The notes under the pieces: generated by a model
Databases searched by the model: none
What the model saw: the letters and a program-made list of their open reading frames with translations, nothing else
What the model was told of the DNA's origin: nothing
Shown: in pieces, positions 7,401-13,400 of the stretch
Numbering within the stretch: the first letter of the stretch is position 1
Layout: the number at the start of each line of letters is the position of its first letter
Translations under genes and position numbers: made by a program
Source: Chrysemys picta bellii
Lineage: Eukaryota
DNA length: 64,000 bases
Assembly: GCF_011386835.1 (NCBI RefSeq)
Contig: NC_088804.1
Coordinates: forward strand, 42,718,001-42,782,000
Direction of reading: 5' to 3'

Positions 7401-10400
7401 GGTGCCGACCCAGCTCTCTGCCTGTGGGCACTGGGAGGTCTGCGCCCAGGTTTGTATCATGGGCCACTTGGGCTGTTTCTTTCTTCCTTTTCTACCAAAA
7501 CCCTTGTCCCAGTACAGCCCCTCTAGTGGGGTGAAGGTGCCCGTTACCATAGTGTCTCCTCCTTCCCGGACAAGACTGGCTGTACCGGTACAAATACATT
7601 TATCCCAGGGTAACTGTCCACATTCGGGAGCTGTCCTGCTTTCACTAAACAGGTGCAACGACTTCTCTGTGTAGACAGGGCTTTCCCTGCAAGGCCCACG
7701 GGGGCATCTGTTTCTCCTTCCCTTGCTCGGTGGTGGTGGCATGGGTTCAAGGTCCCAGGGGCACAGGAGCTGCTGCTTGTGCTGCCCCGCCCTGGCAAAT
7801 GGCGACGGGGTCTGGGCTTGGATTTTGCTCTCTGGAATCGGTGGCTTTGTCCAGCCCCGAAAGAGCCGCTCGTGAGTTGTGTCTGCTGTGTGTGAGCACG
7901 AGGCTCGTATGAGAAAGAGGAGAGGACTCTAGGCGCCAGCAGCCTTTGGGTGCAGCTGCTGCGTCTCAGAGGTGTCCAAAAACCCGTTACCTCTGTGGGA
8001 AATGTGACCTCTCTACTCGTCCATCGATCTCTCCTCCTCCTGTGTGCCGGGGCAGCTGTGTCATGGGAGCTGTGTTCTCTCCTTGCAGAAAGCTATCGAT
8101 CTGGTAACAAAAGCGACTGAGGAGGATAAGGCCAAGAACTATGAGGAGGCGCTGCGGCTGTACCAGCACGCAGTGGAGTACTTTCTACATGCCATCAAAT
8201 GTGAGTCTGGCTCGTCTCTCCTGCATCGCTGGCCTGGCCAGCCTGTGCAAGATCTTTCCCTCGCTGTTCCTCTTAGGGTCCTTCTTCCCATTTCACCCTG
8301 CTGGGAGTCAGGCCTGCCCAGAAGAGCACATCCCCAAACAGATCAGCCTGCACCGGTTGCAGAGCCAGATGGCCTGCTGAGGGTTCCCACAAGTGCAGGC
8401 GTTCTCTGGGGAATGAGCTAACAGTGGAGCTGGGCTCAGAAACCCTGAAGTTGTGGGATTATCCAAAGGGCGGTGGGGCTTCCCTGGCTGTGGGTTTGTG
8501 CTGCGTCCGTCTCTAAGGGCAGCTTCTCCTGGGGGATTCTCTCCAGCTGCCCACCCAGTGGGAGCTGGTGAAAGGAGACGTTGGTGTCTCATGGCTCCGG
8601 AGCGGGCTCTTCTCCCCATTGCTGGTCCTAAAAGGGAGGGTGCTGTAGGGCTCTCCTCACTCCATGCCCGTGGAGAGCTGCTCACTGTCTCTCGGGTGCC
8701 CTGACAGATGAGGCTCACAGTGACAAGGCGAAGGAGAGCATCCGGGCGAAGTGCGTGCAGTACCTGGATCGGGCGGAGAAGCTGAAGGATTATCTACGCA
8801 ACAAAGACAAACAAAGCAAGAAGCCTGTCAAAGAGTCTCCAAATGATAGCAAGGGGTACGTGTGCAGTCTCCATTGCACCCCCAAGCATGCTCATGCCTG
8901 TAACCATGGGAGAGGCCAGCCCTAGGCCCCTGGGCACGCCCTGGGTGCCCCCTCTTCTCCTGGGGGTGACTCCGGCAGTGGGTGTCAAAGCAGCACTTCT
9001 CCCTCTCTGCACTGTATAGTTTGTGAGTGAGCATTGGGGTCTCCTGTTGGGGCTGGCAAGAGCCAGCACTGCGAGGCTTCGACCCTTCTGGCGCAGCCAG
9101 GCCAGATCCTCACTTCCTCCCGATAGCGGGACCTGAGACTTCGCAGGCCTTGCCCATGACTCTGCGTCCTCTTCACAGGAGCGACAGTGACAGCGAGGGT
9201 GAGAATCCGGAGAAGAAGAAGCTGCAGGAGCAGCTGATGGGTAAGAGGCGGGGGCTGGGAGCACGGCATTGCCCTGCAAGGCCTGCTGGGGGAGTTCCTG
9301 ACCTGGGAAGTGGCTGGCGCATGCTGCTTGGTGCGGGGTCGGTGGGACTATGAGCCACTCCTGGAGCGGAATGAGGGGCCGCCTCTTCTCTAACTCTGTG
9401 GCCGCTGGGCAGTTCTGGAGACTCCTCGTGAGCCCTAGCGAAAAGGAGACGTCCCTCATGCGTGATGACAGCCTGGCCCAGGCGGGTGGAGTTTGGCAGC
9501 TGGTGCAGTGACTGGCGGGAGGCTCGGGCGAGCCCCGAGGCAGGAGTGCTGTCGTCTCCTGTCCTGCTAGAGAGAACTGCCTTCCTCTTGCAGGTGCCAT
9601 TGTGATGGAGAAGCCCAATGTGCGGTGGAGCGATGTGGCTGGCCTGGAGGGCGCCAAGGAGGCTCTGAAGGAGGCTGTGATTTTACCCATTAAATTCCCA
9701 CACTTATTCACAGGTGAGGGTTGCTCGGGTAGCTCTGGGGTGAGGCTGGGGCAGGGTGGATTGGCTGCTGCTCCCTCTGAGCGGAACTGTGGCCCTCGTG
9801 GTACTGGTTCTGGTGCCGGGCGGAGACCACGCCCTGGGATCTGGAGTACGGAGCAGAGCCCAGAAACTTCCTTGGCCAACAGCCCTAGCAGAGCCCTGAG
9901 CAGCAAAGTGCATGTGAACTGGCCCGTCCCCCACAGCACGGCAGGAGCAGTGCTGCAGGGGACTGGGGCAGGGGGCTGGCCGACCAGAGTCTGGTACCTC
10001 TGTTCCCTCCGTTCAAAGCCAGCTCTGCCCCTGCTCAGTGCATGCTGTGTTCCAGAAAGCCTTTGACAAGGTACCTCACCAAAGGCTCTTAAGTAAATTG
10101 TCATGGGATAAAAGGGAAGATCCTTTCATGGATTGAGAACTGGTTAGAAGACAGGGAACAAAGGGTAGGAATAAATGGTAAATTCTCAGAATGGAGAGGG
10201 GTAACTAGTGGTGTTCCCCAAGGGTCTGTCCTAGGATCAATTCTATTCAACTTATTCATAAATGATCTGGAGAAAGGGGTAAAAAGATTATACTAAACTG
10301 CTCAAGATAGTTAAGACCAAAGCAGACTGTGAAGAACTTCAAAAAGATTTCACAAAACTAAGTGATTGGGCAACAAAATGGCAAATGAAATGGAATGTGG

Positions 10401-13400
10401 ATAAATGTAAAGTAATGCACATTGGAAAAAATAACCCCAACTATACATACAATATGATGGGGGCTAATTTAGCTACAACTAATGAGGAAAAAGATCTTGG
10501 AGTCATCGTGGATAGTTCTCTGAAGACGTCCACTCAGTGTGCAGCGGCAGTCAAAAAAGCAAACAGGATGTTAATAATCACTCAAAAAGAGATAGAGAAT
10601 AAGACGGAGAATATCTTATTGCCCTTATATAAATCCATAGTATACCCACATCTTGAATACTGTGTCCAGATGTGGTCTCATCTAAAAAAAGATATACTGG
10701 CATTAGAAAAGGTTCAGAGAAGGGCAACTAAAATGATTAGGGGTTTGGAATGGGTCCCATATGAGGAGAGATTAAAGAGACTAGGACTTTTCAGCTTGGA
10801 AAAGAAAAGACTAAGGGGGGATATGATAAGACGTATATAAAATCATGAGTGATGTGGAGAAAGTGAATAAGGAAAAGTTATTTACTTATTCCCATAATAT
10901 AAGAACTAGGGGTCACCAAATGAAATTAATAGACAGCAGGTTTAAAACAAATACAAGGAAGTTCTTCTTCACATAGTGCACAGTCAACTTGTGGAACTCC
11001 TTACCTGAGGAGGTTGTGAAGGCTAGGACTATAACAGTGTTTAAAAGAGAACTGGATAAATTCATGGTGGTTAAGTCCATTAATGGCTATTAGCCAGGAT
11101 GGGTAAGGAATGGTGTCCCTAGCCTCTGTTTGTCAGAGGATGGAGATGGATGGCAGGAGAGAGATCACTTGATCATTACCTAGAGTTAGATTCACTCCCT
11201 CTGGGGCACCTGGCATTGGCCACTGTCAGCAGACAGGATACTGGGCTGGATGGACCTTTGGTCTGATCGAGTACGGCCATTCTTATGTTCTTAGGTAAGC
11301 GCACCCCCTGGCGTGGGATTCTGCTCTTTGGGCCCCCTGGCACGGGGAAGTCGTACCTGGCCAAGGCTGTGGCCACCGAGGCCAACAACTCCACGTTCTT
11401 CTCCGTGTCGTCCTCGGACCTGATGTCGAAGTGGCTGGGAGAGAGCGAGAAGTAAGTTAGCGGCTGGACTGCACTGCTCAGTACCGGGGCAGAGGAGAGT
11501 GCACTGTGGCACTAGCGGGTCTGCCGAGGAAAGTGGGGTAAATGAGAACAAGCTAAGCAGTGTCAGCGGGGGAGCTCCCTGCCTGCAGCCCGAGGGTGCT
11601 GGTCCTAGCTCCCCCACTCAGGGCGTGTGTGGGTTGCAGGGTCAGGACTGGAGGGGAGGCTACCTGGCCGTTAGCGCTGACCCCGTGTCTTTCTGCCCCA
11701 GGCTGGTGAAGAATCTCTTCGAGCTGGCAAGGCAGCACAAACCCTCCATCATCTTCATCGACGAGGTGGACTCTTTGTGCGGCTCCCGGAATGAGAACGA
11801 GAGCGAGGCTGGCCGCAGGATCAAGACGGAGTTCCTGGTGCAGATGCAGGGTGGGTGGGTAGTGCGCTCCGGCCCCCCAGAGCTCACCTCTCCCCCAGCT
11901 GGTTCAGATGGTGCCGAATCAGCCCTGGAGCGGGCGGGTGGAAATGAGAAGTGAAGAATGAGGAGCTGCTCTAGTCCTCAGCCTGCGCGTTCCCTTTGCC
12001 AGGGGCAGCCTCGAAGGGTGCTTGGGGTACTTGGGCGAAGGGCCTGTCTTGGATTGGCAGCTGGTGACTAGCCAGTACTGGGTTTACAATGGTGCCCGTT
12101 CTCTCCCATAGCCCCACCCCCACCCCGCCTCTTCCTCCTGTGGCCCCATCTGTAGTCCTCTGCCCCCCCCGCCCTGTGGGAGTGCTGGGTGGGGCCTCAG
12201 GGGACAGGGCAGAGCGTGGGGGTGGGGCCACGGTCCAGGCTCTGGGGCCCACAGAAGGTTAATCCGGCCCTGTCACCCTTGAGCCGCGGCGCTCTTCCGG
12301 GCCCCTCCGAGGAGTCAGCCCTGCCTGCTCCTTGATCGCTGTTTCTTCTTCCCGGTAGGTGTTGGTAATAACAACGACGGGACCCTGGTCCTCGGTGCCA
12401 CAAATATCCCCTGGGTCTTAGACTCGGCCATTAGGAGAAGGTAAGTGGGAGCTATTGGAAACCAGCAGCCAGAGCTGCTCTCCTCTGCCTGGCCAGGAGC
12501 CACTGCCCCCCCCCCTCTTTGGGAGTGGCCCAGAGAACAGAGTCGTCTGCCCCAGGGCAGGCTTAGGTCTGTCCCCAGCCCCACCCAACAGCCCAGCACC
12601 TCCCTCCCTCCCTCCCTCCCCCAGCCTTCAGCTCTTGCTGGAACCTGTCAGTGCTGCAGTGATCTGCACAGCTCGCTGCTCACCCGCTCTGCCCACTGTC
12701 GGTGCCTAGGTTCGAGAAGCGCATCTACATCCCCTTGCCGGAGGAGGCGGCCCGAGCCCAGATGTTCAGGCTGCACCTGGGGAACACACCACGCATCCTG
12801 ACAGAGGCCAACATCCACGAGCTGGCCAGGAAGACGGACGGCTACTCGGGGGCCGACATCAGCGTCATCGTGCGCGACGCCCTCATGCAGCCCGTCCGCA
12901 AAGTGCAGTCGGCCACACACTTCAAGAAGGTGAGAGCAGGCGTGCGGGACCTGCTGCTCCCCAAGGGCTGCGGCTCCTGAGTCTGGGGCCGCTGGCCTGC
13001 AAGGGAGGGGGGCTCCATGGCCACCCGAGTGTGTCCTTGCCCCTCCTGGTGAGATCCTTCCTGAGTCCCCCAGGCCAGCCCCAGAGGGCCCATGTCAGAG
13101 GGGCCCCCGTGGGCAGTTGGGGAGCCAGCCCTGGCATCTGCCCTCTCAGTGCACTTCCTCTCTGGCATGTGGCAGGTGCGAGGCCCGTCTCGAACCAATC
13201 CCAGCGTAACCATAGATGACCTCCTGACCCCATGCTCGCCGGGGGACCCCGAAGCCATTGAGATGACTTGGATGGAGGTGCCTAGTGAGAAGCTGCTGGA
13301 GCCAGTGATCTGCATGGTAAGTAGTTCGTTAGGGACAGACACGCTGGGCCGGAGGGTGAGCGACTGTCACTTGGCCAGTGACACAAGTCAGTGTGCAACA

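Follow-up and report, generated by a model that had tools for sequence, protein, structure and literature searches.

A CR1 LINE at the 3' end of VPS4A intron 5 in Chrysemys picta bellii and the acceptor signals of exon 6

VPS4A is the ATPase that disassembles ESCRT-III, and a transposon that inserts a few bases from a splice acceptor is a textbook cause of loss of function; insertions of this kind are strongly depleted from genomes. The DNA analysed here, a stretch of 64,000 nucleotides (nt) of Chrysemys picta bellii (assembly GCF_011386835.1, contig NC_088804.1, positions 42,718,001 to 42,782,000 of the forward strand; hereafter, the window), contains a VPS4A gene in which a CR1 long interspersed nuclear element (LINE) landed within 0-3 bases of the end of intron 5. 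In RNA, exon 5 is joined to exon 6 directly downstream of this element. We conclude, with a probability of roughly 0.85, that the CR1 replaced the splice signals of intron 5 and that its tail region now serves exon 6.

The VPS4A locus and its CR1 element

Judging from its translations, the gene is the VPS4A ortholog. The translation of exon 5 is 100% identical to VPS4A-named proteins found in a protein search, exons 5 and 6 reach 95-100% identity with bird proteins listed at NCBI as 'VPS4A protein', and exon 6 contains a Pfam AAA domain (E = 4e-13). These identities, together with the peptide deformylase (Pep_deformylase) gene that adjoins VPS4A in the bird locus, establish the assignment. Translated matches to two bird VPS4A loci fall into 11 exon-sized blocks at about 6660-14320, in agreement with the numbering of exons 5 and 6 in the initial annotation. 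Intron 5 is 1,581 nt long; its first 342 nt are unique host sequence and its last 1.24 kb are occupied by the CR1, which lies on the strand of the gene (Table 1).

The element is, by its sequence, a 5'-truncated copy of a CR1 LINE. It begins in frame at K-A-F-D-K-V-P-H, has at its 5' end a motif that we take to be reverse transcriptase-like, is interrupted by several stops and frameshifts, and ends in a tail whose repeat unit is TTCTTATG. The tail string GGCCATTCTTATGTTCTTA occupies 11275-11293 and is followed by G/GTAAGCGC (the slash marks the exon border, as below), with exon 6 starting at 11295; the tail does run straight into AG/exon 6, as had been proposed. A second CR1 copy is present in the window at about 50100-50930 (79-86% identical over about 400 nt); it ends with GGCCATTCTTATGTTCT, which is common to both copies, and is followed by unrelated DNA. 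The tail recurs at the end of this copy (50914-50932, with two mismatches), which upholds the earlier claim of a tail shared with the CR1 at 50930; two matches were found, versus 0.04 expected from shuffles. Two further tail-like matches, at 34819-34832 (minus strand) and 45288-45301 (plus strand), were rejected as ordinary pyrimidine-rich DNA without a CR1 3' untranslated region (UTR). The second copy is itself broken at about 50405-50610 by about 200 nt with a transfer RNA (tRNA)-like beginning (GGGGATAGCTCAGTGG...), probably a tRNA-derived short interspersed nuclear element nested in the LINE.

A comparison of public sequencing runs with positions 9300-12000 placed 1,000-36,000 contigs per run on 10028-11301 (at >=90%, i.e. 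at least 90%, likeness) and none on the flanking intron; since the pile-up is confined to these positions, the CR1 span is a high-copy interspersed repeat. The longest open reading frame (ORF) of the element (151 aa, C-terminal of the reverse transcriptase core) had no match in a Pfam search and was placed near chordate 'reverse transcriptase family' clusters at 0.92 in the Atlas, which serves as a lead only. Amniote CR1 LINEs carry a conserved hairpin in the 3' UTR and an octamer microsatellite (PMC4316615); in this decayed copy, the fold of 11185-11310 was no more stable than those of shuffles (z = 0.69). The initial annotation had assigned the range 10021-11300 to the insertion; CR1-only sequence starts at 10056, while 10021-10049 is host intron and 10050-10055 is the hexamer TTCCAG shared by host and element.

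Table 1. Features of VPS4A intron 5 and its surroundings in the window, and alignment of the CR1-free contig L001
Feature	Position in window	Strand	Remarks
VPS4A exon 5	9594-9713	+	...FPHLFT and the first base of a Gly codon; ends cacag/gtgagg; RNA contig piece 9593-9711/9713
Host part of intron 5	9714-10049	+	Holds the displaced ancestral pyrimidine tract; aligned with L001; no RNA contig depth
TTCCAG microhomology	10050-10055	+	Host acceptor (ancestral TTGCAG) / CR1 F-Q codons; stranded old AG at 10054-10055
5'-truncated, decayed CR1 LINE	10056-11293 (A11293 ambiguous)	+	Probable C-terminal part of ORF2 (reverse transcriptase onward) with stops and frameshifts, 3' UTR, octamer tail
Candidate branch point CTGAT	11263-11267	+	A at 11266, -29 from the exon (29 nt); CR1 consensus CTGAC
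Pyrimidine tract from the CR1 tail (TTCTTATG + TTCTT)	11280-11292	+	
AG of the acceptor in use	11293-11294	+	A11293 fits both tail and host; G11294 host
VPS4A exon 6	11295-11451	+	P-loop exon; begins GTAAGCGCACC; RNA contig pieces 11293/5-11451 joined to 11702
L001 1-1331	8607-9924		87.7% identity
L001 1329-1366	10018-10055		92% identity
L001 1365-1395	11293-11323		97% identity

The empty site, the junction and its use in RNA

The state of the locus before the insertion is preserved in L001, a Logan assembly contig of 1,395 nt from a related species, which was found via a search with the read-through ORF of exon 5 (hit P0121, a short ORF whose upstream part resembles the translation of intron 4 of the window). 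L001 is without the CR1: the host sequence that lies left of the element in the window is joined directly to exon 6, ...ctgctcagtgtgtgctgtgttgcag/gtaagcgcacccc (gtgttgcag/gtaagcgc). The empty site had been predicted to read ...TGTTCCAG/GTAAGCGC, and the site found, ...TGTTGCAG/GTAAGCGC, differs from this by one base; the CR1-free contig does not already carry TTCTTATGTTCTTAG before exon 6. Intron 5 is also free of CR1 in Nothoprocta (109 nt, ending in tcgcag), in a second bird (L005; 180 nt, tcgcag), in Gekko (97 nt, ccccag) and in a further amniote (L003; 494 nt, ttgcag). As the intron is short and CR1-free in these more distant amniotes, absence of the element is ancestral, and L001 represents an empty site and not a secondary loss. 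A lineage that had lost the CR1 by precise deletion would look the same, and the AG..AG that flanks the element is a 2-nt repeat which could in principle mediate such an event. Nevertheless, this history is very improbable, given that all of the more distant amniotes sampled are CR1-free with short introns ending in ..GCAG/G, that L001 retains the ancestral G, and that exact excision of a 1.2-kb LINE restoring a working splice site is far less likely than absence.

Other ORF matches to exon 5 or exon 6 (birds, squamates, mammals and fish) were rejected as empty sites, as they are without intron similarity to the window, and L002 and L003 were rejected as close empty sites, matching the window in exons only. 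A protein search for more turtle orthologs, in which residues 42-154 of the ORF at 9602-10063 (the translated host intron) served as query, gave no match. Several further observations concern the host part of the intron. A 93-nt stretch (9925-10017), just upstream of the old pyrimidine tract, is absent from L001 (at about 1331) and represents an indel. The host part of intron 5 is entirely open in the frame of exon 5 (9602-10066, a 154-aa ORF) and closes three codons into the CR1; the open frame is probably due to chance in GC-rich sequence. In birds the intron is short and its reading frame is open (P0131, a partial VPS4A of Calcarius ornatus at NCBI, and the bird ORFs P0124 and P0132). In the deposited Calcarius protein the intron is translated, which adds 28 residues between FTG and KRTPW; this seems to be an annotation error rather than a genuine isoform.

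The abutment of the CR1 and exon 6 is not an assembly artefact. A collapsed or chimeric repeat join would be conceivable in view of the short-read contigs, which break within the CR1 in every run. Against this, DNA contigs of another organism (organism E, 1.5-1.8% diverged) reach both junctions independently, one crossing from unique intron into the CR1 (9300-10081) and one from the tail into unique exon 6 (11264-12000). Moreover, a query centred on the 3' junction found 0.64-0.93 of its words in organisms A, B, D, I, J, K and L (nine studies), where the ceiling from exon-only words is about 0.4, and junction words were present in about nine organism labels overall. The probability of an artefact is thus negligible. 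For a stretch consisting to 65% of CR1, 0.65-0.79 of the words sampled occur in organisms A-E.

The element is shared among relatives. It is common to organisms up to at least 1.6% diverged and absent from a lineage about 12% diverged. At about 60 positions the copy departs from the base that most similar copies have, mostly by A for G and T for C, as expected from CpG decay. Taken together, the sharing, the absence and the decay indicate that the insertion is old, yet younger than the split at about 12%, and it constitutes a clean presence/absence marker for the carrier clade.

Splicing of this junction was observed in contigs of two RNA runs from different studies, in which 9713 is joined to 11295 (with GT..AG ends and 1,581 nt skipped), as had been predicted. 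The contig of run X17 (1592 nt) shows no differences from the window and continues from 11451 to 11702 (11452-11701 skipped); that of run X16 has the same two joints and three differences per exon, which indicates a relative as its source. In the RNA contigs examined, 11295 is the only acceptor joined to exon 5. The evidence consists of assembled contigs, from which the existence of a joint can be read, and not isoform proportions; rare forms, or those degraded by nonsense-mediated decay (NMD), are dropped.

The old acceptor was left upstream of the element in an intact-looking form (host tract and CCAG at 10052-10055; 10031-10076). Exon 5 spliced to 10056 would read E-S-L-stop at once, and such an RNA would be an NMD substrate. 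The old acceptor, at 10055, could still be substantially used, so that two acceptors would compete, with an NMD-targeted, CR1-derived exon and a splicing cost as a result. The old tract and an AG are indeed intact, donor-like GT sites are found downstream within the CR1, and degraded E-S-L-stop RNAs would be invisible in contigs. On the other hand, the RNA contigs contain no joint from 9713 to 10056 and have no depth on the host part of the intron (9755-10027), and the old site is weak by crude measures (pyrimidine count and motif scan). Substantial use of the old acceptor is consequently regarded as unlikely.

Breakpoints and splice signals

The 5' junction reads ...GCTGTGTTCCAG/AAAGCC, as initially described, with TTCCAG shared by host and CR1 and the old AG retained at its end. 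Other CR1 copies (loose ends from run X16) align from 10050 and have ...CACCTAGAC before it, which gives a CR1 consensus of GAC-TTC-CAG-AAA-GCC (D-F-Q-K-A). L001 and L003 have TTGCAG as the host hexamer, and birds have tcGcag. Host (G) and CR1 (C) are therefore separated by a single base, 10052, and this position carries the CR1 base, C. At the 3' junction the other copies continue with TTCTTA+TG; the tail would read T at 11294, where the window has G, and G11294 is hence a host base.

As 10052 carries the CR1 base, the most economical model is that the complementary DNA (cDNA) joined the host at TT with a host deletion. In this model, which we favour with moderate confidence, the sequence from CCAG onward is derived from CR1, two or three host bases (GC or GCA) were lost, and the working AG is the original intron-terminal AG. 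Short target-site duplications are compatible with LINE integration, and the junctions could also have arisen with a duplication of 1-2 nt (G or AG), in which case the old ..CAG was kept upstream, the new A or AG came with the insertion, and C10052 is an independent substitution. In keeping with such a duplication, host similarity to L001 continues through 10055 and the tail fits up to A11293. It needs, however, an extra G>C change at the sole position that differs between host and CR1, to exactly the CR1 base, and this position is G in L001, in two birds and in L003. We rate a duplication as falling somewhat short of an even chance. The initial annotation had pictured the junction in this second way; its intact-looking old acceptor and the shared TTCCAG stand, while a fully retained host origin of that acceptor is not favoured, C10052 matching CR1.

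All 1,237 nt upstream of the AG in use are CR1 sequence, and the signals in front of exon 6 lie within them. A motif scan of the 50 nt in front of exon 6 found CTGAT as the sole YTNAY motif at usable distance, and its A11266 is the likely branch point by motif prediction; the consensus CTGAC was taken from the second copy and the loose ends of other CR1 copies. Between CTGAT and the AG there is a 13-nt spacer, followed by TTCTTATGTTCTT. Splice-site strength was judged by motif scans and by counting pyrimidines, which occupy 13 of the 18 positions at -20..-3, versus 10-11 of 18 at the ancestral site, and the last 50 nt of the ancestral site contain no YTNAY motif, in L001 and in the stranded copy alike. 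The CR1 3' end thus appears to have brought a branch point and a tract that equal or surpass the displaced ones, and would have needed only an AG, which was provided by the landing site; the tail would presumably bind U2AF. The claim that the LINE supplies the splice acceptor consequently holds for the pyrimidine tract and the likely branch point, both of which are CR1 sequence, and fails for the AG, in which G11294 is unlike the tail (T expected) and matches the host, and A11293 is ambiguous. The working AG may be the original host AG. Directly between the branch-point motif and the tail (11267-11274), the copy departs from the family consensus at four of eight bases (TCGAGTAC vs CCCAGTAT, including CTGAC>CTGAT), which could be chance, CpG decay or tuning after co-option.

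That a LINE landed on the ancestral 3' splice site, as the initial annotation held, is established by the empty site in L001, the CR1 abutting exon 6 and the RNA joint. The course of events may be reconstructed as follows. In a forebear of the window's species and of its close relatives, a sense CR1 LINE inserted by retrotransposition at the 3' splice site of this intron. Priming of the cDNA would have taken place 0-2 nt upstream of the intron/exon boundary, and the 5'-truncated end of the cDNA would have joined the upstream host DNA via imperfect microhomology, TTCCAG in CR1 and TTGCAG in the host. The insertion shifted the original branch point and pyrimidine tract 1,238 nt upstream. Exon 6 would have been kept through the CR1 3' end, which is predicted to carry a branch point (CTGAC, here CTGAT), the 13-nt spacer and the pyrimidine-rich octamer repeat in the right order and spacing. 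This array of signals runs up to an AG of which the G, and perhaps the A as well, is of host origin, and splicing now joins 9713 to 11295, presumably with the CR1-borne signals.

Several points weigh against this reconstruction or limit it. L001 is the single empty-site ortholog found, and just 31 nt of exon 6 are present on the contig. The two breakpoint models are identical but for one base and are inseparable with one outgroup. 'Constitutive' use of 11295 is not proven by contigs, which show the existence of the joint only, and run X17 is assumed to be CR1-bearing from the absence of differences in 430 exonic bases. Use of the branch point rests on motif prediction, and a further AG is found at 11270-11271, 4-5 nt past the proposed branch A; in the choice of a 3' splice site, an AG 4-5 nt after the branch A is assumed to be too near for use.

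Comparison with known systems

Microhomology-mediated joining of the 5' end of truncated insertions has been described for L1 and other LINE clades. The VPS4A insertion resembles these cases in that five of six bases agree between the host DNA at the 5' junction and the CR1 sequence immediately before the point of truncation. It differs in that the microhomology is the hexamer of a host acceptor, and an acceptor look-alike has been left stranded upstream.

Among the hallmarks of CR1 are copies heavily truncated at the 5' end and an octamer microsatellite that is conserved at the 3' end (PMC4316615). The element at VPS4A is an ordinary representative of the CR1 LINEs of amniotes (PMC4316615), with strong 5' truncation, a part that probably encoded reverse transcriptase, a 3' UTR with octamer repeats and many genomic copies; only its landing site and the aftermath are unusual.

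Transposons are known as a source of 3' splice sites in exonization, in which antisense Alu poly-T tracts and fragments of MIR, L2 and CR1 provide acceptors for new, mostly alternative exons (PMC2394776). As in these cases, retroelement sequence, here a pyrimidine-rich terminal repeat, acts as tract and branch region at VPS4A. Exonization, however, creates a new exon, usually alternative and of low inclusion (PMC2394776), whereas the insertion at VPS4A makes none: an ancient conserved coding exon, which encodes the P-loop of the AAA ATPase, had its signals replaced wholesale, and the protein is unchanged. Splice sites donated by transposons are thus known, and replacement of the signals of a pre-existing coding exon with an unchanged messenger RNA is a new variation on this theme. 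A literature search, incomplete in its coverage, found no published description of CR1 tails as acceptors of pre-existing exons. For VPS4A both the state before (the empty site) and the state after (the spliced RNA) are in hand, and they suggest that a conserved exon can exchange its complete branch-point and tract region for unrelated sequence in a single step if the incoming element carries equivalent signals.

The human and mouse genomes show a depletion of fixed transposons close to exons, and an insertion less than 20 bp from an acceptor, particularly that of a sense LINE, is judged very likely to do harm (PMC3088655). The VPS4A element falls into such a 'hazardous zone', being a sense LINE within 20 bp of an acceptor, a class that is strongly under-represented among fixed elements. 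Unlike the insertions expected there (PMC3088655), it is fixed, common to several relatives and correctly spliced in the RNA contigs examined, a tolerated exception. It offers a concrete and testable explanation for why CR1, which dominates among the LINEs of sauropsids, might do less harm near acceptors than mammalian L1. The wider proposal of the initial annotation, that CR1 tails may be a general source of constitutive acceptors among sauropsids, is a hypothesis. In a specific form, which we put forward tentatively and consider doubtful, the CR1 3' end would be a pre-formed 3' splice-site module (CTGAC, a spacer of about 17 nt and octamer repeats, with the AG missing), and turtles, crocodilians and birds would systematically tolerate sense CR1s that lie shortly before an acceptor AG. 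If this were true, CR1 tails would have renewed the acceptor signals of conserved exons time and again, in contrast to mammals, in which sense LINEs are depleted near acceptors.

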